A stretch of 64,000 nt of DNA from Phaeosaccion multiseriatum (Eukaryota > Protista > Ochrophyta, other classes), in assembly GCA_965112735.1 (NCBI GenBank), contig OZ218956.1, positions 3,596,001-3,660,000 on the forward strand. Direction: 5' to 3'. Within the stretch, counting starts at the first letter, position 1, and each line of letters starts with the position of its first letter. Below are positions 6,439-64,000 of the stretch, piece by piece. The notes beneath the pieces were generated by a model, which was given only the letters and a program-made list of their open reading frames with translations, made no database searches and had not been told where the DNA came from. The translations under genes were made by a program, and so were the position numbers.

Positions 6439-8857
6439 TCACGTCTGCCAAATGCGAATGGTGCCGTCCTCAGACCCCGTCGCGTACGTGTTCCCATCGG
6501 GTGCATACCGCATGGTACGGACAGGTCCGTGGTGGCCCTTGTGGCACTCTTTCTCCTCCCCCGTGTTGAAGTCGAACACACGCACCCACAGATCGCAGCC
6601 CCCGGCCACGAACTTGGTCCCCGAGGGATGCAGCGTGCATCCGCCTTCCTCCTTAAAGTAAATCTGCGGTGAGCCCTGTGCTCGATTGAGCGTGCGAGGT
6701 AGGAGAGGAAAGAAGAGGAGAGAAGAGAAGAGGAGAGGAGAGGGGGTGGATCGGAGGATGGAGGATAGACAGAGAGGAGAGAGGACAATAGCAGAACCGG
6801 GGGATGGGAGGGAGACGTGAGCGTACGCATGGAGCGTGATAAAGGAGAGGGGGCTGAGCGAAAATACAAGGAGGCAAGGCACTTAGTTGCCCTGTCCTCC
6901 TCTCTCATCCCATTGAAATCGACCCCAGCACCAGCAAGGAAGATGGGTTGAAAACACACACACAAACCAACGGGGCAGACTGACGCACTCCGCACCCTCC
7001 TTCCTTAACTTGCCCTACTTATCCTACCACTACTTGCCCCACTTTACCCTCCTTGCCCTCCTTCCACTCCTTACTCTCTACTCACCGTGACGCTCTTGCC
7101 CATGGGCATTTTGTGCTTCTGTAGCACGCCCCAGGTGTTGGCGTCCAAGAAGGTGGCGTGCTCTCCGGCGGCGGTGGAGATAATGTCGAGGTTGCGGTGC
7201 ACCTCGACATCCTGAATAGGGCCGCCCAGATCGGCCGTTTTGACCACCTTTCGGGAGGACAGTGGATGGGGGCAACAAGTTGGAGGACAGTGGATGAGGA
7301 GAGGCGAGGGTGGTGGTGGACGGGGAGAGGAGAGGAGACGAGAAAAAATAATTAGCTCCACGTAAAAAACACAGATACAAACCACTGACGCAACATCAAT
7401 GAGACGGGCCCATCCACTGCCATCCATCAATCACAGCACTACAATCGTACTACGACACCATCCATCGCCACCAAGATGGCACTTGTCACGCCTTGCACAA
7501 GCAGAGGCATACGGGCAGGCCGCAAGCAGGGCAGGCAGGATATGGGTAGCATATGGGTGCACCGTACAGTAGCGTACCGTACCTCGCTGGTACGGAGGTC
7601 CCACTCTCTTAGAATGCCATCGGCTCCTCCGGTGATGATGGAGGAGGGGTCCTTGCCCCATCTGAGGCGAATGATGGCCTTCTTGCTCGTGGTGTCGGAG
7701 GTACGGAGCATTTGGGCCTCGCTGTCTGGGGAAGCAACGTCGAAGAGACGGACAATGCCCTGTGGAGGATTGTAAGGGAGGGAAGGAGGATTGAGGGAAG
7801 GATTCCGACTTGGCGGGGATGAAGAGCATGAAGACGGTGTCGAGCGCCCCCAACACGTGCTTCTCGATGCACGCAACGGAGAAGGTTAGTCAGTCTCCCC
7901 CTCCCTCCGCCCATACAACACGTTCAACAAATCGACACACCGACCTCTTGGCCCGCCGTGGCGAGCTTGCTCCTGTCGCTGGAGAAGCCCACGCTCTTGC
8001 AAATGTGCTTGTGAGCGAACTCGTGCACCTGCTCGCCGGTGATGGCGTCCCACAAGCGGGCCGTGAAGTCCGCAGATGCCGTGGCGGCCAACAGGGCTGA
8101 TCGCGGAGGGGAGGGGAGGGGGGTGGGGGGGGTGGGAATGGGTACAGGAGAGCAGAGCACAACAGAAACACAGCAGCGTAGGGCAGGACAGGGTAGAGCA
8201 GAGCAAGAGCAGCATGACCCACCTTGATCGTCCAGACACACACCCCACACAGCCCCCTTGTGGCCCTCGAACGTTCCTATCCAGTCCCCTGTGTCGGCCC
8301 TGCGGATCATGGGCGTCTTGGCTGACCACAGGAGAAGAGAAAAGGGGGCGGGAAAGAGGTTGGGAATGAAGGTCATGATCGCAGTATTGCTAGGGTGAGC
8401 AGGGTAAAGTCTTAAGCGTGGAGGGAATGCGGCTTCTCCTTCTCATCCAAATCGATGATGCTCTTCTCCACTCCAGAATTGCGATCCTTACACACGCGTC
8501 CCCAACACTCCTCCCTGATCATCCCGCCCTTTCCCCACCACCTCCCTGCGTCCTTTGCCTCCACCGAAGCACAGCCAGGCAAAGACAGCCCACCCTGCGT
8601 CCTTTGTCTCCACCGAAGCACCGCCAGGCAAAGCCAGGCCACCCCTCGTCATCATCTCGAAAGCTCGCTTCTTCCCTGGCCTTCCTACCCACCCCTCCTT
8701 AGCTCTCACCATGGCATCCGCTGATGAGGAAGACGCCGTCGTCGGTAGGCTGGCTGAAGGCAATTTCCGCAATGGGCCTGGAGTGTCCAGGGCACACAAT
8801 GGGGATCTGCCGAGCCGGCACAGGCGCCCCTCCCCCTCCACCAGCGAATTCAGTCAT
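6439..8857 (-). CDS. STRAP: WD40 protein STRAP/UNRIP (serine-threonine kinase receptor-associated protein), multi-exon
   Basis: Exons read [49 protein letters not shown] and [30 protein letters not shown], with GT-AG boundaries. Confidence 0.92.
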
Positions 8858-9302
8858 CGCAATTCCCTTTCGGATCTTCCTGGAGCCTTCACCGACACTG
8901 CCCTCAGACCTTTGCTGTTGCTGCTGCAGTTAGCCTTGGATTGAGCAAGCCAAAGGGGGGGTGGAGGATCGGGGAGGCTGTACGCAGAGAAGGGAACAGT
9001 GAGGGAAAATAAGATCCTTACGTAAGGGAGGAGACTCCCTCCCCCCTTCCCCTTTGGTCTCCCAACTAAAAGGCCAAGCTCTCTTTACAGAGGCCCTCTG
9101 CCCTTCTATTTCTCTCGGGAATCTCTCCAAGCCCCCTTGATCTGAAGGGGTGAGGCTACTTCAAGCGGGCGTTTAAGAAGAGGGAGAAGATCGAACAGGA
9201 TCGAACAGGGCAGGGCCGGAAGGGGTTGGATAATAGAGCGGCAACTTGTCAGAGACTAGGGATCTGCTCGGGCGCCTGTGGCTCTCCAAGGGTAGAGTAT
9301 AC

Positions 9303-9345
<43 letters not shown>

Positions 9346-9349
<4 letters not shown>

Positions 9350-9988
9350 ATCTCTCCCCGGGAGGAGAGCTGCTGACACAGGCGACGAGAAGACTCGGGA
9401 GAGACGACATGGCAGGGGTGTCGGTGGGGGAGTGGTGCCTCATAATTATCGGGTTTGTGATTGTTGGCCTTTTCGTTGACCGGTTTACCCACAAGAGTTG
9501 GTTGTGCTGCCGGTGGTGCGCCCGTTGCTGCGACACGTGCTTGAACGGAAAGGTCAGTGGGGGGCATTCCATTCCCTATGCATGTGCTGCTGTCTTGCTT
9601 TGATGGGCCTGTTGGCACTCACAAGTGATGACTGACAGTGTTAGAGAGCAGCAAGCAGAGCTTGTAGTTGGGTAGCGAGATTCTTATCTGGGAGAGGGAA
9701 AGAGAGAGAGAGGGAAGAGAGCCGAGCTGACACCCCCCCCGACCCCCCCCCCCCCCCCCCTGCAAACGATACCGACCACAGCCGCTAGAACCCGAAGTGC
9801 CCCCCCCCCCCCCATCACCCAAGCGAGGCTACGTCAAGGAGTACGACGAGGACTTCCACAAGGGGGGGGGCTGGAACCTGCAGCAGCAGGGCAGAGTTCT
9901 CAAGGACGAGGAGGTCGGCTATGGAGGGGCCGTCATTGGGGACGCGGACGCATACAGATACGAAGACGCACCGAGCAGCAGGGCGTGA
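9346..9988 (+). CDS. Small predicted single-pass membrane protein, probably 2 exons
   Basis: Hydrophobic segment WCLIIIGFVIVGLFV followed by Cys-rich CCRWCARCC and a donor near 9552. A downstream ORF ends at 9988. Confidence 0.4.
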
Positions 9989-10919
9989 CGTGACGTGACA
10001 CGTGATGTGGTTGATACAGGGGGAAGAGCGGTGTGTGGGTGCGTGCGTGGGAGGAACCGCGAGGAGTTAAGCTCATCAGCGTCTTGTCTTGGCAGGCATA
10101 GGGAGAGAGAGAGAGAGAGCACGAGGGGACGGGTCGGTCTGTCTGTGGTCAAGAGAGAGAGAGCATGCGGGGCCTTTTGGCGGGTCTATACTCGGCCTCC
10201 AAGACCCTCGAAAGGAAGCACCCCAGCAGACAGAAGGCGCCGCCAAGGCGAGGGGCTTGAGTCCCTGTTCATAGAGGACGAAGCGAAGCAGCGGCGAAGG
10301 GCCAAGGTGCGGTGCATGGGAAGGAGAGGCCCCTTGTCCTCACCTCACCTACACTTGAGCTCTTGAGGGTGTGCCCCGAGCCAAGTGGAGAATGTAAAGA
10401 AGCCCGTGGGCATGTGCTGGATCAAGATTCCTTTACTGCTCTGCTGTCGATGCATTCAGGCTTCTCCTGAAGTGCTTCGGTGTGTAAGGTCCCGTACGTG
10501 GATATCCCAACAATAGAGTAGAGAGAAAATAGAGGGAGGGGGAAAGAGGCTGCGGTCGCCCTCTCTCTCCCTTTACTCTCAATAATAATCAGTGAACACT
10601 CGATTTGCGTAAGAATCGCCCAAATCTCCTGTTTTTTGGGGGTCGGGCGGCAAGGGGGAGTGCTCTTGCAGAAATGCTGTCAAGTAGGGAAGGCGATGAA
10701 AGCCGAAAGACTATGGAATGGATCGATAGGCATCTCAAAGAGCTACACGTAGAGCTCTAGCGCTTCTCCTTCTCCCAGCGTCATTTTTCTTCCCCAAAGG
10801 CCCAAAGGGGGAAACTGAGCGTTAAAATTGATACAGTACGTAGCCCACACCAAACGAGAAATGCCTCTTCGGTCTGCAAGGCTTGTGAGGTGTGGAGAAC
10901 AATCTCAATGCTCTTGCTC

Positions 10920-49581: not shown

Positions 49582-50217
49582 GTCAAGAACGTGGATAACA
49601 CATGCAGGGACGAGCCGCCTTTGAGCATCACGCCTCAGCCGCACGTCGTCGTAACCCCATGATGAGCGCGGAGACGACCACGGATGGCCCACACGAGGAG
49701 CGGAAGGGACCATGTTGCACGAGATGGCTGAGGTCATGGCCTCGGCGGTTAAGAAGCTTCGTTCCGCCCCCCCTGCGATGAGCGTTGTTGTTGGTGAAGC
49801 GGACGACGAGGCGGCGAAGCTGGGGACGTTCCTGGACCTGCTGAGGGGCGGAAAGTTCCAACTGGGACATCATGAAGACGCCTATGAAATGCTCAATTTC
49901 ATCCTGGAGCACCTCGAACATCATCACCCTGACCTGAAATCGCTGCTCCGGTGGAACTTCGGGTGCAGCATGCAAGTGAAATTCTCCCAAAAGTGCAGTT
50001 CTCCTTCCTGCTGGCCTGGTGGTGGCTCCTCGAGCCACACAGCAGCCGCTGAGGACCTCACGGGGCCTCTGGCACTCCCGACTTGTGAGGTGAGTGTTTA
50101 GCTACATGTCAACCAGCCCACTCCCAACTCCCTCACACGCACACGCAAATACTAGATCCGCCTCGCTTATGCATGCCGTCAAGCATGGCTGTAGCTAATT
50201 GCCTGTTCCACCCTCAC

Positions 50218-50274
<57 letters not shown>

Positions 50275-51678
50275 GGCGAAGAGCATTGATGGGCATGTTC
50301 CTACGCGGAGAGGCGTCGCGAGAGGGCGTGGAGTGCGACGAGTGCCGTGGAAGGGGTCCCGAGACTGAGACGGAAGCAAGGATTCATTTCGTCGGTCCCC
50401 CCGTTCATTTGCTCATTAGTGGTATCTGTACCGTCGTCGAACCAAGGCTTGAAGCCTCCGACGAGGTCGCCACTGCTGGCCAGGAGGGGGAGCGATTGAC
50501 TCGCAGCATCTCTCACAGTCATCAGCAGAACGGAAGAGCAGCGGTGGAAGGACGCGGGCAAGCGAGCCTCCATCCGTCTTTTCCCTTTGGGGCGAAGGAC
50601 TTAGCCGGCGCGCAGCGGACTCTCAACGGAGCTCATGACATGGGGAAGAGGATGACGGGGGGTCCTGCTTCACATGATGCGGAGGAGGAGGAGGAGGAGG
50701 AGGAGGAGAAGGAGGAGAAGGAGGAGGAGGAGGAGGAGGAGGAGGAGGAGGAGGAGGAGGAGGAGGAGGAGGAGGAGGAGGAGGAGAAGGAGGAGGAGGA
50801 GAAGAAGAAGAAGAAGAAAAAGAAGAAGAAGAAGAAGAAGGCCATAGAAAGGAAAGCACGGGCTGAGGGCACCGCACGAATGCTGATGGGCAATATAAAG
50901 CCACATGCGCAGGTCCAGAAGGAGCGGGTGGTCAAGAATGAGAAGCTTGGCCGCCCAGCGTGGGAGAGCAGAGTGCGTGTGTAGGACGACGACGCCTTCT
51001 TTAGGAGGATGCTGGCCCCGCTCTTCGCCCACGACAAGGAGTTTATGGGCCGAGAGGACAAAGCGGTGGGGGAGTTGAAGGAGCTTCTCGAGTCCGCATC
51101 CGAGGAGGACATCCCATGGGTAACACTTTTCGGATCAGCGTCGGCGAAGGGGCCAGGGAAGAAGGAGGAGAAGTTCCACCGCGACTTTGCCGGGAAGTTG
51201 TACGCCCCCGCTCATCTCGGGACGGTACCAGCGCTGCAAGCTGGTAAGTCTCCAGTACAGAAGGGGTCAAAACCACAACTTGCAGCGCCTTGCAGCTGAG
51301 CTACAGCTGTGTGTGTGTGTGTGAGTGAGTGAGTGAGAGTGAGTGAGTGAGAGTGAGTGAGTGCGTGCGTGCGTAAGTGAGTGAGCGCGTGCGTGCGTGA
51401 GTGAGCGAGGGAGTGAGTTTGTGTGTGAGTGTTGGCGTGCGTGAGTGAGTGCGTGCGTGCGTGAGGGAGTGAGGTAGTGAGTTTCTGTGTGAGTCAGTGG
51501 ATGAGTGAGTGAGAGTGCGTGCGTGAGTGCGTGAGTGCGTTAGTGCGTGCGTGAGTGAGCGAGGGAGTGAGTTTGTGTGTGAGTGCGTGCGTGAGTGAGT
51601 GAGGGGTTCTTTCCTTGCTCCTCCAAAAGCTCATTGTCTGTCTTCCCTTCTTGTCTCCATCCCGACCCATCTGTCCCG

Positions 51679-51711
<33 letters not shown>

Positions 51712-54700
51712 GAGGGGCTCAGAGAGTTGGTGGCGCTGCACCTTGCGCAAAAACGCGCCACATTGCGCAAAGCGAAAGCCGCCTGCAACGCCACATCCGC
51801 TGCCATCTCCTCGTCACTCCTTTCGGAGTCTGCATCATACTCAGTGGTAGGCACTATGAGCTGCACAAGATCTCGGCCGAGTTTCTCTGCGTCACCCTTC
51901 ACCCTTTGTCCTGCTTTCCAGTCCTCCATCTTCTTGACCTGGGCGGCAACATCGGCGAGCAAGGTCCTTGTATCGGGCAGCTTTGCTCCTCCCTGCTTGT
52001 CGCGACGCTCAACACGCCCGACTGCGCCACGCGTGCTCGTATAGTGCTCTGTCAAGGACACAACAATCTCGGCTTGCGCAAGGTGCAGCGCCACCAACTC
52101 ACTGAGCCCCCCTTGCACCTGTGCGTGCGTGTGTGAGTGAGTGTATGAGTGAGAGTGCGTGCGTGAGTGAGTGAGGGGTTCTTTCCTTGCTTCTCCAAAA
52201 GCTCATTGTCTGTCTTCCCTTCTTGTCTCCATCCCGACCCATCTGTCCCGCACACACACACACAGGTGCAACAGGGGCTCAGTGAGTTGGGCACCTTGCG
52301 CAAGCCGAGATTGTTGTGTCCTTGACGGAGCACTATACGCGCACGCGTGGCGCAGTCGGGCCTGTTGAGCGTCGCGGGAAGCAGGGAGGAGCAAAGCTGC
52401 CCGCTACAAGGACCTTGCTCGCCGATGTTGCCGCCCAGGTGAAGAAGATGGAGGACTGGAAAGCAGGGCAAAGGATGAGGGGTGACGCAGAGAAACTTGG
52501 CCAAGATCTTGTGCAGCTCAGAGTGCCTACCGCTGAGTATGGTGCAGACTCCGGAAGGAGTGACAACAAGGAGATTGCAGCTGCGGAGGTGGCGTTGCAG
52601 GCGGCTTTCGCTGCGGGTGCCTACGTTGAGGCTTCCAGCAGAAGGATGGACAGGTCCACCTGGGTCGCAGCGGTGGCCTCTGAGGCAGCTGCCTATCGTC
52701 TAAACCGCCACCACCCCAGCGCCGAGGATAGGAAACTGGCCATGGGCATGGGGCGGTTGCTGGCAAAAAAGCTCGCGAGAGCTGATTCCAATCTTTTCAG
52801 CCCCTTCTCGAACGTGGAGACGACGACACGACGGAGGGCGAGATCGAGAGGCGGGGGGCGAGGGACCAGTGGCTCAGAGTAGCAGAAGCTGTGATGCAAC
52901 TAGTAGAACCCCAGCAGCACGTGGACAAGGCGGTGTATCTCGTGACACTCTACCAGGTGCAGGACAGGAGAGCTCAAGGCTGACGATGAGAAGCTTTCTC
53001 GCCTGGTGCTTGAGACCCTTGCACACACAGATCCGAGCGGGCCGAGCGGACCATCCCCCGAGCGGACAGCGTTTCGTTGGGCTGCCCTTTATCAGCACTT
53101 GTGGCAGACGTACGGCCTTCCAAGGATCACGAAGCGGAGGCTGCGCGGCGTGTCCGAGCCAGCCGACCTTGTCAAGGCGGCGAAGGAGATGGTGGACAAG
53201 GAGGGAGAGGAGAGGGGCGAGAAGGCAGCAGAGAAAGCAGCCGTAGCAGCGGCAACAGCGGCCTTGAGGCACGGACCCAAGTCTTTGGCGTACGAGGTGG
53301 GTGCTCAGCAGACGAACAGCGGACTGGTGCGCTGCACCTGTGCAGGAGGTGCAGGTGCAGCGCACCAGTCCGCTGTTCGTCTGCTGAGCACCCACCTCGT
53401 ACGCCAAAGACTTGGGTCCGTGCCTCAAGGCCGCTCTTGCCGCTCCTGCCGCTGCTTTCTCTGCCTCCTTCTTCTCCTTCTCACTCCTCTCCTCTCCCTC
53501 CTTGTCCACCATCTTCCTCGCATCCTCGACAAGGTCGGCGGGCTTCGGCATGCGTTTCAGCTTCCACTTCGTGATCCTTGGAAGGCCGTACTTCTGCCGC
53601 AAGTGCTGATAAAGGGCAGCCCAAAGAAACGCTGTCCGCTCGGGGGATTGTCCGCTCGGCCCGCTCGGTTCTGTGTGTGCAAGGGTCTCAAGCACCAGGC
53701 GAGAAAGATACTCATCGTCAGCCTTGAGCTTTCCCGTCCTGTACCACACCTGGTAGAGTGTCACAAGAAACAACGCCTTGAACACGGGCTGCTGGGGCCG
53801 ACTCTCGTGTTGTCGCATCGCATCTTCTGCTTTTCTGAGCCACCCCGCCCGCTCCTTCATGTCGCCCTCCGTCGTCTCCACGTTCGAGAAGGGGCTGAAA
53901 AGATGGGAATCAGCTCTCGCGAGCTTTTGTGCCAGCAACCGCCCCATGCCCATGGCCAGTTTCCTATCCTCGGCGCTGGCTGGGCTGGTGGCGGTTTAGA
54001 CGATAGGCAGCTGCCCCAGAGGCCACCGCTGCGACCCAGGTTGACCTGTCCATGCTTCTGCTGGAAGCTTCAACGTAGGCACCCGCAGCGAAAGCCGCCT
54101 GCAACGCCACCTCCGCAGCTGCAGCTGCAATCTCCTTGTCACTCTTGTCGGAGTCTGCACCATACTCAGTTGTAGGCACCATGTTGTCCTAGAGAATTTG
54201 CGACGCCGACCGGACGAGAGCGAAGGCGTATAGTGGTGGGCACTCCAAGTGGCGCGCTCTACGAAAAGACGAGCTTCCTCGCAAGGCCGGGTTGGGGCCG
54301 AATACAAAGTACGTGGAGGTGCTTGATACCATAGAGGGCTTGGACGATGATGCCAATCTACTACGACGCGACTACTTGGGAAAACTCACTCCCGGTCAGT
54401 GCTGGGGCGGTACGGATCCGGGGGTACGCTCATTCCTCCACATCTAGCTACCATATGGGCAACAATTGTGTGTATCGGGTTGGGCACAAGTTCTCTGCGA
54501 AAGTGCGGAAGGTGCAGAAGAGAATCGCCCACCTGGACGGGGCGATACACGTGGCGAGAGAGGTAAGCAAGCAGCTAGTAGCGGGAAGTTGACTAGCTAC
54601 CAAAGGCAAGGCAGGGGAAAACTGGCAGCTCACTCGCTCCGCTCAGCCATGGAAGGATGCATCCCCTCCGCCCCTCCTCTCTTGCCCCTACCCTTGACTT

Positions 54701-55455
54701 GTTCCCTGGCTGCTGACTGACTCGGGCGCTCCCGCCCTCCTCTCTCTCTCCCTTCTTCGCTTCCCTTCTCGCCTTTGCTAGAACGGAGACACTGACACCG
54801 CCAAGATGCGCGAGCGTTTGAAGCACGAAACTTTTGTGCTGCACACAATCGCAATCAGGCTCATTACAGCGACATTTACCCCCCGGGGGGGGGGGGGGGC
54901 AAGCGTGGGCGAGCCGGAAAGGCTGCTTGAGAGCGGGTCTGCCCAGGGACATGGGAAAGGTCATGGCGGCTCTCTCCTTCGGACTACTTCGACAGCGGCT
55001 TCGATTGGTGAGTGCTGGGCAGCCAGGGGAGGAGCAGTAGCCGGATGCTTCATCGGGGAGCCCAAAACAAGCAAGAAGGAGGCGACTGCCCTCCGCCTTG
55101 CCTCTTACTACTTGCTTCTCCTTTGCCTCTGCCTCCTCTCGCTCGTCCTCCTCCCTCACCAGGCGGGATCGTCTCCATCGTGCCCTCTGACCACCCTCTG
55201 CGAGCCCAGCCAGCGAAGCCTACACCACCAAAACGTGTGGCGCTTGCGGGGCGTACAACGGGGCTGTCGGGGGCAAGAAGCAGTGGGTTTGCCCCACTTG
55301 TCACCAGATGCTACTCCGCGACCCCTCAGCCGCCCGGACCATCACCCTGTTGGGGTTGCAGGAGTTCGCAACAAGGGGGCGCCTCCCATCCTCGTCCGTG
55401 CGTGCTCAAGCCACAAGTGAAGAAGGCACGGACACAGCAAACCTTCCCAGTAAGT
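49582..55455 (+). pseudogene. Rearranged pseudogene: USP (peptidase C19)-like remnants, shared central region and Fanzor2-like RuvC/zinc ribbon
   Basis: USP-like VKNVDNTC (49582-49605), HEDAYEMLNFILEHL and CDEC..PVHLLI. Central IPWVTLFGS and VQEGLRELVAL match the minus paralog. RuvC motifs GTDPGVR (D at 54415), EAYTTKTC..C..C..C and LLRDPSAARTI. Lesions include stops at 50982 and 54445, frameshifts at ~51205, ~54448, ~54890 and 55207-55214, and internal inversions. Confidence 0.85.
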
Positions 55456-56008
55456 CGCTCGCATGCCTACCTGCCTGCCTGCTCGCTCGGCCGTGCCTCG
55501 CTCCGCTTGTTCTTGTTTACGTCTGCAACCAAGCAAGTGCCGACATTCACATTCGCTTAGCTAAGCTTTTCTTCACTTGTTCTTGCCTCTGCCGCTTTTT
55601 TTGATTTGCTTTCTTGACTTGCCCTGCCTCGCTGCCTCGCCCCCCCCCCCGGCCCCTGGCTGCCTGCCTGCCTGGCCTCCGCCCTCTCGCTCGTCCTGCT
55701 GTTGCTTTGCTAGTCGGGGCCACTGGCCGGGGGAGCAGCGGGCGAGGCTGCGCCGAGTCTCCTAGGAGACAAGGAGCAGTCGCCAGAGGCTGTACAGACT
55801 ACGGTCCGACTGCTCCTTGTGGAGCACACAAGGAGCAGTCGGATCGTAGGCTGTACAGCCTCTTGCAACTGCTCCTTGTCTCGGGGAGCAGTCGGACCGT
55901 AGTATATAGGTGAGTCATAGCTAAAATGCGTTTGCGTTGCTTGCTGCTGCCTGCTGCTCCCCTCCGTCCCCAGCCACGCCAAAGTCAGAAAATTTTACCC
56001 CCAACTTT

Positions 56009-56158
56009 TCCTCTTTCCTAACCTGCCCCTGTCCCCGCCCGCCCCCCCCCCGCCCCTCCGCCCCTCCGCCCCTGCCCTCCGTCTTTTTGGCTTTTTGGCG
56101 ATTGCTTCCCTCCTCCCGCTCCCGCCTTTGCCAAAAAATTCAAATTTTTTTTTCTCCT
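56009..56158 (+). other. Conserved non-coding 3' element downstream of plus-strand Fanzor (candidate omegaRNA scaffold or element end)
   Basis: Colinear with the reverse complement of 56853-56988: tcctctttcct(a/g)acct.cccct.tccccgcccgcccc...ccctccgcccctgccctccg...ggcgatt...cccgcctttgccaaaaaatt. Confidence 0.55.
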
Positions 56159-56852: not shown

Positions 56853-56988
56853 AGGGAGAAGAAAAAGAAATTTGGAATTTTTTGGCAAAGGCGGGAAGAG
56901 CAAAATCGCCGACGAGGCAGGCAATCGGAGGGCAGGGGCGGAGGGCAGAGGGGCGGGCGGGGAGAGGGGAAGGTCAGGAAAGAGGAGA
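56853..56988 (-). other. Conserved non-coding 3' element downstream of minus-strand Fanzor (candidate omegaRNA scaffold or element end)
   Basis: Homologous to 56009-56158 and in the same orientation relative to its own Fanzor gene. Confidence 0.55.
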
Positions 56989-57365
56989 AGACAAAGGCAT
57001 AGATGGCGATGGCGGGAACAAGGAGGCGAGCAGAGGTTAGGACAGGAAGGCGCGCGAGTGCAAGCAACCGCAACGAAGTTATCTCCGCCCACTCACCTAC
57101 AACGATTGTTGTACAGTCTCAGCCCGGCAGGGCTGAGCCCGGGAGGGCTGAGCCCTGCAGGGCTGACTGCTTCCCCGGCTTGACGCCCCAGCTGTTGTTG
57201 ATTCGTTGCCCGCCCGAGCACATGATGATGAGTGAGGACAAGTAAGCAAGCCAGGGAAACTCAGGGGCTGTTTCTTGTTCAGGCAGCAAGCAAGCAAGTA
57301 GGCAACACCAATGGCTGGACAGGCAGATGAGCGAGACGCAGGCAGGGGCGCAATCAGCAACTTAC

Positions 57366-58541
57366 TGGGAAGATGTTGTGGGTGGCGTGGCCTTGGAGTT
57401 GGCCATGCCTTTGAGAAGTCGTACAGCCCGAACAGAGTGATTGTTCGGGCCGCACAAGGGTCGCGCAACAGCGTGGCCTTGCAGGTGGGGCAAGTCCACA
57501 CCTTCTTGGCCCCCACGCACTCGTTGAATGCACCACAGGCGGTGCATGTCTTGGTGGTGAAGGCCTCGCTGGGCTCACGCAGCACTAGTGAGCAGGAGGG
57601 AGAGGCGATGGCCTGAGCGAGAGGAGTTCGGGCAGCCAAAGAAGGAAGTCAATGAGAGGAATTGTTAGCTCAGCCACACGAGGGTTGCTGATGGGGACGG
57701 AGGTGTCTCAGTCTCAGCGACACCAGCCAGCCAGCCAGCCCAACACCAAGCCAACAACAAGCAACAGACGCACACACGCACCGTCTTGAGCCGTTGGCGG
57801 AATAGACCCATGGAGAGGGCGTCCATGTCCCTCCCCATATCCCTCGGCAGCCCCGAGATCTGGCGGCCCCGCCGGCTGGACCATGCCTGGGCTCGGACAG
57901 GAGGCAACACAAAGTGCGTGAAGTTCGCCACGATGAGCCGTATGGCTATCGTGTGGAGGACGAGCGTCTTGTGGTGCAAGAGCGCCCGCATCTTGGCCGC
58001 CTCCAGGCGAAGAGCCCGCGTGTCCTGTCCACTCTGTGCGCGGGCGGAGGGAGGGAGGGAGGGATTAGAAAGTGACATCAGCCACGACAAGAGACTTGGG
58101 CGAGGCACGCATCCTCCTCACCTGCGCTGCCTGCCACACCTGGCTCTCCAGCTTCGCTATCCTCCTCTGCAGCGGCCGCATGGAGGCGGAGAAGCCGTGA
58201 CCCACCCTGAAGAAGCGCCCAGTGTGGGCACACCAGATGGACAGGAACGTCCGCACTCCGGGGTCGGCCCCTCCCCATCTTTGCTCGGGGGTTAGGCCCG
58301 CAAGACACTCCCTGACCTCGCGCCGGAACTCCAGCGTCTGCCCCTCCAGGGGATTCAGCACATCCACGTACTTGGTGTTGGCGTGGAGGCCAGAGCGCGG
58401 ACGAAGGTCCTCCACACGGAGACCGCGCCACTTTCTGTCCTGGCCATGCTCTCCTGCCATGGCTCGGTCCAGCTTCCTGATCTTGGCGTCCACGCCCGAC
58501 AGCTCCTTCTTCTTCTTGCGGCGGCTCCGCCATTCCTTGAC
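57366..58541 (-). CDS. Fanzor2/TnpB-like RuvC-zinc ribbon module (exons 58541-58122, 58033-57782, 57612-~57366)
   Basis: RuvC-I WGGADPGVRTF (D 58265), FVLPP at the canonical-Glu position, LSMGLFRQRL, relocated Glu EAFTTKTC (E 57567), CTACG..WTCPTC zinc ribbon and RuvC-III LRDPCAARTI (D 57462). Both internal introns are phase-0 GT-AG. Confidence 0.93.
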
Positions 58542-58683
58542 CTGATGTCGGCCAAGAGGGGAAACAAGCCACAAGCCAAAGGAGTTCTTTGAGATGACAA
58601 GGTGTCAAGGTACTACTGCTGCTGCTGCTCCTGCTGCTGCTACTACTGCTGCTACTACTGTTGCTGCTCTGCAGCTATTCCTG

Positions 58684-58734
<51 letters not shown>

Positions 58735-61700
58735 TTAAGAGTACTTACCCCGAGTTGCTGCAGGTCTCGACGAAGTAGCTTGGCTCTATAACGCAACTCT
58801 ACCAACTCCTCCATCCGGCCCGCGTCGTCAGCCCCTTCCTCCCTCCCTCCCTCGCTCCCTCGCCCCCTCCCTCCCTCGCTCCCTCCCTCCCTCCCTCCCT
58901 CGCTCCCTCGCCCCCTCCCTCCCTCGCTCCCTCGCTCCCTCCCTCCCTCGCTCCCTCGCTCCCTCCCTCTCTTCCTCCCTCTCTCCCTCCCTCCCTCCCT
59001 CCCTCCCTCCCTCCCTCTCTTCCTCCCTCTCTCCCTCCCTCCCTTCCTCCCTCCCTCCCTCTCTCCCTCTCTCTCTCCCTCCCTCGCTCCCTCGCTCCCT
59101 CCCTCGCTCCCTCCCTCGCTCCCCCCCTCCCCCACCCCTCCCTCCCCCCCTCTCCCACCCCCACCCGCTCCCCCAGGCCTCTCACGGCGGAGCTTGCAGT
59201 AATGCTCCAACTCCTCCTTCTCCCCCCTCTCCCCCCCATGCACTTCCATGTGCGGAACAGCTCGTTGGGGTTCCTCAAACTGGAGATGGAGCGATGTACC
59301 ATGGGCGCAGTCGCCAAGCACGGGGCCCGTCACGCAAAGCCACGCTGGCTGCACCGACGTCGTCCCATCCGCCCGGTGGGCTGGCTCCCGCCAAAGGCGC
59401 CGCGAGGGCTTCCCTGTCTGGTCGAACAGGGTCAGAGTGTGCCCCGCCGTGACGCACACGGTCACCCTCTCGATCCATCGGGCTCCGTTATTGACGAGGA
59501 TGGCTTCACCCCCTCCCACCCCATCTTTCCGGTACTCCAGCCCAAACTCGCCCGGGTTGAGGTGCCCACAACACCCTGCCTTGAAGTATTCGGTGCTCTG
59601 CACCTGCCTCTCCCCACGCTCCGCTGCGCGGCGCTCCCCACGGAATCGCCCAACCCCAACGTGTGTCTGCATCGCGTCGATCTGCCTGTCAACGGATGGG
59701 GTGAGAAAGCGCCTCGACGGAGGCCGGAGACAACGCTGTGTGATGGACTTGTGGTCAAGGTCCACACCCGCCACAGCCACGGTAAAGATCGCCACCGCGG
59801 CCTCTCCCATGGACGTGTCTCTGCCGTACACGCGGTTGCTCAGTCTCCTCATCGCCTTGACGGAGCCAGGTTGGGTGAGGACAAGAGCGGCAAGGCGGGC
59901 ATCAAACACCGGGCCGGTTGTAAGCCCCTGCCAACTGTCCTGCCTGGCAAGGGCGGCGCGTGCGCCCTCAACCTTATCCTGCTCCTGAGCCTCCTGCTGC
60001 TGAGCCTCCTGCTCCTGAGCCTCCTGCTGCTGAGCCTCCTGCTGCTGAGCCTCCTGCTGCTGAGCCTCCTGCTGCTGAGCCTCCTGCCCTTCATCGGACT
60101 CTACCGTGCCGAAGCACTTGTTCACGTGCTCGTCGGCAGTGGTGCGCACCTCCTCCACCTCCTTCCCCTTCCTCGCTGCTATGAAACCAGCGGTTACTGC
60201 AGCGTCCAGCAGAAGGTTCTTCAGCTCATCCCCCTGGTATCCCGCTGATCTGGCATACTCTGCGGCCCCACAGACCGCAAGCAACTGCTGGCAACCCACA
60301 CGTTGATCTGAGTCCCGCGTGCCGCACACTGCCTCGAAAGCCTCCACAGCGAGAATGGCAATCTCTTCCGCGACAGGTCGTCGTCGGACGACGCTGAGCT
60401 TCTTGACCTGTGCCTTGACATCCCCGAGAAGAGTCAAAGGACTTGGGAGCTGCCGTCCAGCCTGCCGTCCTCGGAACTCCTCTGCCGTGGTGGGCCCTTC
60501 CTTGGAGCCGGCGTATTTGTACGTGAGGGACGGCACAAACTCGGCTCTCGACATGTAGAGGGCCAACTCATCTAGAAAGCCCTTTTGCATCTGAGAAGAG
60601 GGGCAGGCAAAGGCGTGTGAGTTGGCAGCGTCAGATGCAGCAGGTACAAGAAGAGCGTGGCACACATGTTGGAATTCGGACCATCGTCGACATTTGGAGG
60701 GGGGTATTCCATTGTAGGCCTCATCCGTCCCTGGTGATATACAAGAGCGTGGGCTCCCTCTCTCCTCCCTTTCCCCTCCCCTCCCACTCAGCCACTCACC
60801 AGCACGCAGCGTCCTCGTCTCCCTTGCGTGATGAAGGAGTAAAGATTGGCCGCAAAAGCTACATGAGCCTGCTCGCGGATAGGGGGCGGTCGTCCCCTTG
60901 TCTCCGACCCCCCGCTCCCGTAGACGGTCATCCAGGGAATCTTCTCCGCCTTTGCAGACTGCAGCAGCAACTTGGCCTCCTCCACCGCCGCCTCCTCATG
61001 CCCTCGATACCTCTCCTGTAACAGGAGCGGCGCCATGAGGCTCCTCAGCTGCGTGTCAAGGCTATCGTCGGTATGCCACGAAAGAGAGGCCGTCCACCCA
61101 CCCCCCCCCCTTCCCCCTAGCTGCTTCGCCACCCGCGCCCTCTTGGCACTGACATCAGCGCTTGTTTGCGAGCTTCCCCCGCGCATCCTCGCCGTGTCCT
61201 CCTTCCTCTCCTGCCACCCCTCTTCCTCCTCCCGCTTCTTCTTGGCCTGGCGGTTTTTCTTCTTCTCAGCCTTGGAGGGAGGCCTGGGCAAGCGCTCCTT
61301 CTCATGGCCCTTCACCCCCTGCGCCGCCCAAAGCTTGAGCTCGCCTTGGCATGCCTCACTTGTCGCGCCAAGCTTCACCAACAGCCCCAAGCACGCGTCA
61401 AACCTGTCCTTCGCGTCCCCGTAGGTCTGTGGTGACTCCAGGCTACACTTGCGGGGCAGACCCTCCAACTCGTCATTGCGCCAGAGCCCCAAGAGTGCTT
61501 CAAGTCTCTTAGCCCCGGCCAGAAAGGAGGCGCGGTTGGAGCTGCCCCCCGATTTGACCATTGACACAATGAGGTAGGGATCCATCCGCATCAACTGCTT
61601 GATCAACGTGAAGACTTGCTGCGCCTCCTCAGCCGAGTCCTCAGCCGTGAATGAGATTTCATTCCCCACGCCCCACCACGGCTCGAGCTTAGCACTAAAG

Positions 61701-61741
61701 TGCCCCCAGAGTTTGCACAGCTCCGACCAGCAGCTGCCGCC

Positions 61742-61790
<49 letters not shown>

Positions 61791-63992
61791 GGCTCCTTGG
61801 CCCTCCCTTGAGCATCAAAAACCTCCCCCTGGATGGTGGTGTCCTCTCGGTGTTGTAGCATCCCCTTGTCCAGGAGGAAGCGAGGAACGCACGCGACCAG
61901 ATCCTTCAGCAAAGCCATGTCGTTGAAGGCACTCTGTGCCACCCCTCGACTCGCAGCTCCTCCCCTCAGCACACTCAACAGCGCTGGCTGCTGCTGGACA
62001 ATCACAGATATTGTACTTCTGCTCTTCTTCTCCTTCGCCTTTCCACCTGTCTTCCTCTTTGCTGCCGCTTCCTTCTTCCTCTTTGCTGCTGCAGCAGCTG
62101 CCGCTTCCTCCTTCCTCTTGTTCTCCTCGGCCATCCGCATAGGGGCAAGCCGAGCGTTTCGCAACACTGTGGCGCCGGCCTCACCATCATCATCCCCTGT
62201 CGGGAGGAAACTATACATGTTGGAGCGGAATTGCTGCATCACCCGCCGATTCTGCTGCGCCGCCCTCTCGCGCCTTCGTAGCTTGTTCTTCTGCCTGTCC
62301 TCCCTCACTTGCGTTGATGCCATAATGGCATCATTCCGCTCCACACCAGCCCCCGAGACACGGTCGCTAGGGAAGGGCACATTCAACTTGAGGCGCTGGC
62401 CGTAGTGCTTCCATTTCTCGGGCTTCTCCGCCGTCAGGACGACCGGCTTGAAGCCCGAGACTTCGGCACCATCGCGACACAGGGGCATCGACTCCTTCGC
62501 CCAGGCACTGGCACACACTTCTGGAAACTGCATCCCCTCCCGAAGAGTCAACACGTCTTTCCCAACAGCCAACATCGACACCTTCCCTTTGCCCCCCTTG
62601 CAGTCCTCGCGAGCCGCGCAAGCCCGGCGATGCGCCGCGAGCTGCATAGGTCTCCTAGTCTGGCGCAAATAACGCCATGGGTCGGCGGCAAGCTTGAGGA
62701 GGAGGCACCGAAGCAGCAGGTCTTGCTTGTCTCCCTCCGCCGTCGGCTCCACCAGGACAATAAGAGTGGTGTTATGCCACGTTCGCCAGTGACCTTGACC
62801 CCCCGCGAAAGTGGCTAACACGTGCTTGTTCTCGAGCACCTTGACCCTCCTCAAGCGCGGAAGCAGGTTGGAGCAGAAGAGGCTATCCTCTTTGACCTGA
62901 CCATGCCAAGCGAGAAGAAGGTTGAAGAAAAGGTAAGGGGTGGATTCTGCATCGGCTCCGTCGTGTCTGCCTGCCTGCCCATATGCCTGCCTGCCTGCCC
63001 ATATGCCTGCCTGCCTGCCTCCCTCTCTGCCTGCCCATATGCCTCTCTGCCTGCCTGCCCATATGCCTGCCCATATGCCTGCCTGCCTGCCTGCCTGCCT
63101 GCCTGCCCATATGCCCCTGTTCCAGCCGTGCCCTTCGCTCAAATCAAATGCTCACCTCAAGGCCAGCGTTCGTGAGGATGCTCCTCCCCCCCCCCCTGAC
63201 AGGCCTGGAGTCGCCAATGTAGATGATGTTGCAGTTGAGTTTTCCTTCACTCTTCCACGTTGCCAGTTCTTGGGCACACCCGATGCAGGGGAGCGTCGAA
63301 ACGACCAGTACCACCTCATCAGTAGGAGTCCAGCCGGACCGCTTCCCGATGCACTCCAGCAGCTCCGTCTCTGCATGAGCGCCCACTGTAACTCCATGGA
63401 GACAGCTGGACACATCAGCTCTGGCCGGTCCACTCCGTCTTGCCACAAGCCACTCCTCTCTGGTGACGTTGTAGGCCCCCGCTGCTATGGCACTGTGGTT
63501 CTGCCCCGGTTCCTTCGCCTTCACAGCCTCAGAATACACACGCCTGGACAGATCCACCACACCGTCCTTCCACGGAACCTTCTCATCCAGCACCGTCGGA
63601 CGCAGTTCCCGCCCCCCGCCCTCCTCCTGCTGCTGCTCCTGCTGCTGCTGCTGCTGCTGCTCCTGCTGCTGCTGCTGCTGCTGCTCCTGCTGCTGCTCAG
63701 GCGCGGACACGTCAGGCCTCGAAAGCAGCGTCGGCCCCCCGCGCTTCTTGCTCTTGTTCTTCTCTCTCTGCTGCTGCTGCTGCTGCTGCGGCTGCTGCTC
63801 CTGAGGCGGGGGTAGGTCGGCCGCACACCAGGCATCCACAGCGCTGTTGGGCACCACGAGCACCTCGAACAGCAGATTGTTGTGCCTGCCTCTCATAAGG
63901 GCAATGCACTTGCGCTTGTCTGTATCCACCCCCCCGCCCAGGCCCTCCCAGAGGGCGTCGGCCATCTCCTTGCCCTCCTCCTCACCGAGCAT
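57366..63992 (-). CDS. Proposed giant deaminase-Fanzor fusion gene (about 1,900 aa or more, at least 6 exons, may extend past window end)
   Basis: Exons 63992-63156, 62896-60800, 60590-58749, 58541-58122, 58033-57782 and 57612-~57366 join through phase-0 GT-AG introns with no stop. Exon 1 holds HAE-x26-PCIGC. Confidence 0.7.
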
Positions 63993-64000
63993 GGTGAACG

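Follow-up and report, generated by a model that had tools for sequence, protein, structure and literature searches.

Fanzors are, to our knowledge, the only known RNA-guided nucleases of eukaryotes; their natural role is unknown, and all described members we know of are compact, stand-alone proteins. Known deaminases of the cytidine deaminase (CDA) superfamily occur alone or fused to toxin-delivery or RNA-binding modules, and not to an RNA-guided nuclease. The two kinds of activity have been joined by design in engineered base editors, where a deaminase is fused to Cas9, Cas12, TnpB or IscB (reviewed in PMC10787141). One described Fanzor2, ApmFz2 of mimivirus (L79, PDB 9b0l), has the RuvC triad D324, E467 and D501, with E467 displaced 50 residues from the canonical position (PMC11832414). 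Here we analyze 64,000 nt of the ochrophyte Phaeosaccion multiseriatum (assembly GCA_965112735.1, contig OZ218956.1, positions 3,596,001 to 3,660,000 of the forward strand; hereafter the window, with positions counted from its first letter). Its minus strand carries, between 63992 and 57367, an intron-split gene whose last visible exons are predicted to encode a Fanzor2 nuclease and whose first visible exon encodes a deaminase-like domain. The explanation that we favor as a whole, and hold to be just on the probable side, is that a multi-copy mobile element carries a giant intron-split deaminase-Fanzor2 gene.

Six pieces of open reading frame (ORF) make up the visible gene. Every junction on the minus strand was read base by base, and the five donors and five CAG acceptors, all in phase 0, were confirmed where an earlier reading of the letters alone (the sequence-only reading) had put them; its stop-free frame of about 1,900 residues comes to 1,898 when the pieces are joined (279 + 699 + 614 + 140 + 84 + 82). 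The exons (63992–63156, 62896–60800, 60590–58749, 58541–58122, 58033–57782 and 57612–57367) are each stop-free and a multiple of three in length. The donors read GAG/GTGAGC (63155), CTG/GTGAGT (60799), GGG/GTAAGT (58748), CAG/GTGAGG (58121) and ACG/GTGCGT (57781), and the acceptor CAGs, ending at 62897, 60591, 58542, 58034 and 57613, are every one preceded by a pyrimidine-rich tract. The frame of exon 1 is open up to the window edge at 64000, the true 5′ end being out of view, and the gene need not begin with the ATG at 63992. At the other end of the gene, a further intron is suggested after exon 6, because the next in-frame stop comes only at 57099 and a GTAAGT donor at 57365 has a counterpart in a paralogous Fanzor on the plus strand (described below). 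The 5.7 kb of coding sequence is intact in the window copy, with none of the five splice-site pairs or of the catalytic residues lost.

The sequence-only reading took the C-terminus for a TnpB/Fanzor RuvC domain with a C4 zinc ribbon, and Pfam, NCBIfam, PDB and profile matches all bear this out, with the triad intact and rearranged. Exon 6 matched Pfam Cas12f1-like_TNB (PF07282) at E 4.8e-7 (30.3 bits, above the 26.3 cut-off). Its best NCBIfam match was IS607_TnpB (E 2.6e-6), and the mimivirus Fanzor2 structure (PDB 9b0l) aligned with it at E 6.4e-5, with E1832 falling on E467 and D1867 on D501. Using the alignment of exon 6 and its paralogue as query, 79 metagenomic loci (L001–L079) were recovered, most of them uninterrupted ORFs of 450–780 residues with HTH_OrfB_IS605 and TNB domains. 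A profile made from 45 full-length intronless relatives among them matched the spliced model at residues 1677–1880 in a single continuous alignment running through exons 4, 5 and 6 (125 bits, E 1.8e-40), and hhalign gave a probability of 99.65. The alignment was gapless across the 1732/1733 and 1816/1817 junctions, where intron 4 (58034–58121, 88 nt, GTGAGG...CAG) and intron 5 (57613–57781, 169 nt, GTGCGT...CAG) are removed.

Each catalytic position could be placed in this alignment. The RuvC-I aspartate, D1685 (58265–58263), lies in the GADPGVRTF motif of exon 4 (140 residues), which aligned with alDPGvrtflT of the profile and reads GTDPGVRSF in the paralogue. Exon 5 (84 residues) spans the RuvC helical and RuvC-II region; its canonical RuvC-II site reads FVLPPV, with no glutamate, and aligned with IllPkf of the relatives, likewise without one. 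The rearranged glutamate, E1832 (SEAFTTKTC, 57567–57565), is instead found about 50 residues C-terminal of the canonical position, in exon 6 (82 residues), which also holds the CxxC...CxxC zinc ribbon and the RuvC-III aspartate D1867 (LLRD, 57462–57460) in a segment aligned with dRDvnaArNI, the RD..AA..I motif. Taken together, exons 4–6 are predicted to encode a bona fide nuclease of the Fanzor2/IS607-TnpB type with an intact, rearranged RuvC triad (D1685, E1832, D1867) and a C4 zinc ribbon.

The likeness to ApmFz2 (PMC11832414, PMC10530073) extends to the shift of the glutamate to just ahead of the zinc ribbon (NEYLTTKTC in ApmFz2, SEAFTTKTC here), and both proteins share the RD..AA..I RuvC-III motif, the CxxC...CxxC ribbon and an N-terminal basic stretch resembling a nuclear localization signal (NLS). 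ApmFz2 is a 520-residue protein encoded without introns, whereas the present model has at least 1,898 residues and five or more introns; beyond ApmFz2 it has large low-complexity inserts, an unrecognizable WED/REC half and about 1,300 extra N-terminal residues that include the deaminase-like domain. Exons 4–6 likewise resemble, by profile match and by the absence of the canonical RuvC-II glutamate, the IS607-family TnpB proteins ('TnpB2, pro-Fanzor') and the 79 metagenomic relatives, which, unlike the present gene, are single ORFs without a deaminase. At 1,898 residues against 450–780 for the relatives, the model is far longer than usual Fanzors, as the sequence-only reading had also stated. 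In one of the relatives, L036 (contig Ga0114962_10000023, GC content 0.21, giant-virus-like), a separate HAE...PC..C ORF was seen at L036:5772, about 2.5 kb upstream of the Fanzor2-like ORF (8261–10153), adjacent to it and unfused.

Exon 3 (614 residues) is presumed to be the WED/REC part and contains low-complexity QQEA and GGRE inserts. For this half hhalign gave a register of low confidence, which puts the intron 3 junction, QQLG/VKEWRSRRKKKK, in a g-n-i..F..kfKsKK-type motif of the relatives. Intron 3 (58542–58748, 207 nt, GTAAGT...CAG) contains (AGT)n and (GCA)n repeats and is in frame but with a stop at 58607; to the splice signals and phase on which the sequence-only reading rested this junction, the alignment adds a low-confidence placement. 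An HTH_OrfB-like motif in exon 3 (RRFLTPSVDRQIDAMQTHVGVGRFRGE), read by eye, was dropped, as the relatives profile gave it no support. The junction of exons 2 and 3, which the sequence-only reading had regarded as backed by the paralogue, stood up: intron 2 (60591–60799, 209 nt, GTGAGT...CAG) lies at the same site in both genes, RCVL/GTGAGT...CAG/MQKG here and RCKL/GTAAGT...CAG/VQEG in the paralogue. The introns between exons 2 and 6 are thus supported by homology, as far as alignments can tell.

In exon 1 (279 visible residues), a Q-rich N-terminal stretch is followed by a divergent zinc-deaminase-like domain (63156–63545, about residues 150–279) whose core ends with the strand AGLE(V). The HAE-x26-PCIGC signature reported by the sequence-only reading was found as H206-A-E208 (63377–63369) and P235-C236-I-G-C239 (63290–63276), 26 residues apart, and the AIAAGAY segment ahead of it at 63491–63471. 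Across all six frames of the window, H[AVC]E-x20-35-PCxxC has this single occurrence, whereas shuffled windows would give 0.01 on average. Residues 151–244 matched nearly the full profile of Pfam dCMP_cyt_deam_1 (PF00383) at E 1.3e-4 (22.2 bits, under the 25-bit cut-off), and seven more families of the same clan matched the same stretch: SNAD4 (E 8.7e-4), APOBEC_N (E 0.008), APOBEC2, NAD1, NAD2, APOBEC4-like and OTT_1508. The best PDB matches were catalytic (C-terminal) domains of APOBEC3G (E 0.0026), with HAE and PCxxC aligned and the alignment reaching the last residues of exon 1. Language-model feature matches in the Atlas fell mostly in deaminase clusters, their scores counting as a lead only. 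No deaminase family of NCBIfam matched exon 1, no homologue of the deaminase region was found in the protein database even at E 10, and viral contigs gave no match when searched with the deaminase domain or with exon 4. A single-sequence AlphaFold2 (AF2) model of the domain reached a predicted local distance difference test score (pLDDT) of 35 and was unusable; the order of secondary-structure elements was compatible with a deaminase fold.

The deaminase assignment of the sequence-only reading thus gains from intact motifs and from matches that converge on one clan, and it is held back by scores that all lie below curated thresholds; weakly supported as it is, the exon-1 domain may be described as deaminase-like and divergent, its catalytic motifs intact, rather than as a proven family member. 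The weak matches lean toward nucleic-acid deaminases of the AID/APOBEC type over nucleotide deaminases. With the AID/APOBEC-like branch of the CDA superfamily (the APOBEC3G C-terminal domain; PF00383, PF18750, PF08210) the domain shares the two halves of H-A-E...P-C-x-x-C with 26 residues between them, a predicted strand-helix-strand succession around the motifs, and a helix between the last two strands. Unlike members of that branch, exon 1 scores below the family cut-offs and gave no homologues in the searches, and its fold is predicted at low confidence.

Whether deaminase and nuclease form one protein turns on the junction of exons 1 and 2. Exon 2 is a single open frame of 699 codons, the last ~170 of which are homologous to the K-rich linker and core start of the paralogue. 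The C-terminal part of exon 2 (60800–61264) carries a K-rich, NLS-like stretch, KKKNRQAKKKR (61264–61232), and the start of the region common with the paralogous Fanzor. The preceding orphan N-terminal extension (61265–62896, ~530–544 residues) has its first in-frame ATG at codon 84 (62647). It contains no known domain, a feature search in the Atlas was uninformative, and a search of exon 2 against 1.84 billion protein representatives returned a spurious repeat protein only; AF2 without an alignment gave a pLDDT of 42 for the exon-2 N-terminus. The orphan part is nevertheless coding-like, with a GC content of 0.70–0.79 at third codon positions vs 0.43–0.45 at second positions. Under a codon model trained on the remainder of the gene, the first 83 codons of exon 2, all of which precede the ATG at 62647, scored +27 bits in frame vs −33 and −35 out of frame.

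The coding signal also changes close to the proposed splice sites. Intron 1 (62897–63155, 259 nt) begins with GTGAGC, contains a (GGCA)n/CATATGGGCAGG microsatellite and ends in a ~30-nt pyrimidine tract and CAG that resemble those of the four other introns. In the frame of exon 2 its codon log-odds is −18.5; the cumulative score in that frame has its minimum at 62938 and turns upward ~40 nt before the acceptor at 62897, while the score in the exon-1 frame has its maximum exactly at the donor, 63155. No consensus donor other than GAG/GTGAGC lies close to where exon 1 ends, and this donor and the acceptor share phase 0. Within the intron there is no in-frame ATG, and no GT besides the donor and one at 62901, four bases ahead of the acceptor. 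From the coding-like codons before the first ATG, the turning points of the score, the splice signals and the shared phase, we infer that exon 2 is an internal exon with exon 1 as its natural upstream partner (63156/62896). The sequence-only reading had rested this junction on splice signals and phase; alone among the five it gained no support from homology, and coding-potential change points and pre-ATG codons have been added to it. We regard it as fairly probable that the deaminase exon and the Fanzor exons are fused in one protein of at least 1,898 residues.

A second Fanzor gene lies on the plus strand, convergent with the first and decayed (50199–55450). Its USP-like N-terminal piece, acidic/K-rich linker and core start share one frame, broken by a single stop at 50982, and because of this shared frame long enzyme-bearing N-terminal extensions seem to be a trait of the present Fanzor lineage. 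The region 50859–51206 (+) aligned with the C-terminal part of exon 2, and the paralogue matches exon 3 at residues 12–65. The USP-like module (49712–50400, +), split by an intron with a (CA)n repeat, is weakly assigned, from a Pfam Peptidase_C98 match at E 0.038 and from GHHEDAYEMLNFILEHL and VECDECRG...PPVHLLISG read by eye. Between the two genes the ratio of non-synonymous to synonymous divergence (dN/dS) is 0.07–0.40 (0.07 in exon 5, 0.33 in the shared C-terminal part of exon 2), with synonymous divergence saturated and the catalytic motifs kept in both. Since synonymous sites are saturated and yet dN/dS stays this low, the Fanzor core was under long purifying selection during the divergence of the two lineages.

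The middle of the paralogue (51300–54400, +) is rearranged into large fold-backs. One has arms at 51786–52086 and 52291–52591 (301 nt, 90%), and another, with several pairs at 86–98%, has arms at ~52576–53340 and 53352–54123 around an 11-nt center. Their transcripts, if made, would be long hairpin RNAs consisting of Fanzor coding sequence, which might trigger silencing of the family. A further, almost perfect hairpin of 56 nt (93% complementary, with a loop of 5 nt) was noted at 55766–55882, past the last exon of the paralogue.

The sequence is present in multiple copies in four DNA-like sequencing runs. Contigs from these runs are fragmented and deep over the gene and carry many alternative letters. 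They include an in-frame CAC insertion in the pre-ATG part of exon 2. In contigs of three runs, 35 other letters stand in place of 914 nt of exon 3 (59232–60147), a net difference of 879 nt that keeps the frame; with sides of only 21 nt, they weakly suggest that the family includes a form with a shortened middle. No serine recombinase was seen beside the window copy within the window, the element's 5′ end lying outside it.

A C/T-rich block of ~130–150 nt is conserved ~400–500 nt downstream of each of the two convergent Fanzor genes, at 56863–56990 (−) and, behind the paralogue, at 56005–56153 (+). A conserved TAGGTGAGT precedes it, and the similarity ends directly after GCCAAAAAATTC(C)AAATTT. 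The block matched no family of Rfam. It is a candidate for the end of the element, for a guide-RNA scaffold, or for a last exon or intron signal.

Several observations weigh against the favored explanation. A fused deaminase was found in none of the 79 metagenomic relatives, and the deaminase assignment stays below every curated threshold, with no homologue and no confident model. The WED/REC half is unrecognizable, exon 3 having given no match in Pfam, the PDB, the protein database, the relatives profile or the Atlas. Differences among copies, mapped on the model, are 10 synonymous vs 26 non-synonymous and fall 11/10/15 on the three codon positions, a pattern that looks neutral, as expected for recent transposon copies, so that intactness may reflect youth only; on the fusion itself this pattern speaks neither way. 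Exon 1 would run into an in-frame stop (TGA at 63146–63144) three codons past the donor, and it could equally be a terminal exon. Contigs from four runs over 57401–63400 read through the proposed introns (e.g., 57401–58295 and 63114–63400) and contain no matching splice joints; the runs behave like DNA and are uninformative for splicing. Two joints in the run contigs, 58064/62963 and 57791/58041, were dismissed because their sides are only 20–21 nt long and lie in low-complexity repeats. Finally, word depth over exon 1 (63201–63400) is 2–4 times lower than over exons 2–6 (57401–62800) in all four runs; depth is not copy number, and some genomic copies may be without the deaminase exon.

The stop behind the donor and the lower depth over exon 1 would both suit two separate products. 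The deaminase exon would then be the last coding exon of an upstream gene, ending with the TGA at 63146, and the Fanzor would be made separately, from an ATG internal to exon 2 (62647 being the first) or from another 5′ exon that skips the deaminase. The alignment with APOBEC3G agrees with this, since in it the last core strand falls on the final residues of exon 1, so that the domain is complete without exon 2. Two products would, however, leave the 83 coding-like codons of exon 2 ahead of any ATG, and a coding signal that begins at the acceptor, to be accounted for. Only 250 nt of microsatellite separate the stop from the restart of coding, with no space for a 3′ untranslated region and a promoter, and the consensus donor and acceptor are compatible in phase. 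We consider separate products unlikely, if still to be reckoned with, and a single fused protein the better account of the junction.

It is quite improbable, in our view, that the family is a dead relic, no longer expressed or functional, of which the window copy is a young unbroken duplicate and the fusion a by-product of element structure. The neutral pattern of copy differences would be expected of a relic, the neighboring paralogue is decayed and rearranged into fold-backs, and the sequence was found in no RNA run. Set against this are the preservation of 5.7 kb of coding sequence with five splice-site pairs and all catalytic residues, the strong purifying selection on the core while two lineages diverged, and the low divergence among copies, which implies recent transposition and hence at least one functional source.

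If the favored explanation of a mobile element with a fused deaminase-Fanzor2 gene holds, the protein would enter the nucleus by way of its K-rich stretches. Its Fanzor module would bind a guide RNA that is transcribed from the element's conserved 3′ end, and would cut matching DNA, like other Fanzor2/TnpB nucleases, which would favor the maintenance or spread of the element. The N-terminal region would consist of variable accessory enzymes that travel with the nuclease, a deaminase here and a USP-like module in the paralogue; because the paralogue has this different N-terminal module, a variable accessory region is a better reading than a dedicated editing module. The deaminase would thus be tethered to an RNA-guided DNA binder, and direction of its activity by the guide is a less likely sub-case.

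That sub-case is what the sequence-only reading had proposed: a single polypeptide acting as a natural RNA-guided base editor or mutator, in which the Fanzor opens an R-loop and C (or A) in the strand so displaced is converted by the deaminase. Such a natural RNA-guided deaminase would open a guide-matched site with its Fanzor2 part, and the tethered AID/APOBEC-like domain would mutate the exposed strand, for example destroying target sites or silencing rival copies. Intact motifs in the deaminase, an intact Fanzor, the probable fusion of both, the lean of the weak matches toward nucleic-acid deaminases and the candidate guide-RNA region behind the gene are consistent with it, yet this is the least probable of the readings considered: the RuvC triad is intact, neither dead nor that of a nickase, so that cutting and not editing is the default outcome; E208 and D1685 lie ~1,400 residues apart, much of it low-complexity or orphan sequence; a different enzyme stands at the same place in the paralogue, which fits a variable accessory array better; and cysteine-protease-like modules could even cleave a polyprotein. 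Of the claim that guide-directed R-loop formation and deamination are coupled in one chain, the adjacency of the two domains stands and nothing beyond it, while the intact triad and the long separation argue the other way. The comparison with engineered base editors runs along the same line: the deaminase is likewise N-terminal to an RNA-guided DNA binder, but in those editors the nuclease is dead or a nickase and the linker has 16–32 residues, while the present model combines an intact triad with a linker of more than 1,000 residues.

The surrounding DNA is GC-rich (~60%) and eukaryotic, with ordinary host genes in the window: a 20-repeat PPR protein, an IGPD-HAD fusion, MRG and NuA4/EAF6.

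A natural fusion of a Fanzor or TnpB with a deaminase was not found in the major Fanzor and TnpB surveys or in the full-text literature searched, in agreement with the sequence-only reading, which knew of no description of this architecture. Only a demonstration of guide-directed deamination would put the locus in a category of its own. Even on a modest reading it is useful, as an intact six-exon gene of 1,898 residues with a defined triad and with putative splice junctions and a putative guide region open to direct testing. If the deaminase turned out to follow the guide, nature would have its first known counterpart to the engineered base editors, and in a eukaryote; genome engineering would gain a new scaffold, and there would be a concrete way to ask how Fanzors serve their elements. 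And if a Fanzor2 lineage with large, variable N-terminal enzyme modules does exist, it would mean that mobile elements of eukaryotes assemble effectors of several enzymes with an RNA-guided DNA binder at their center.

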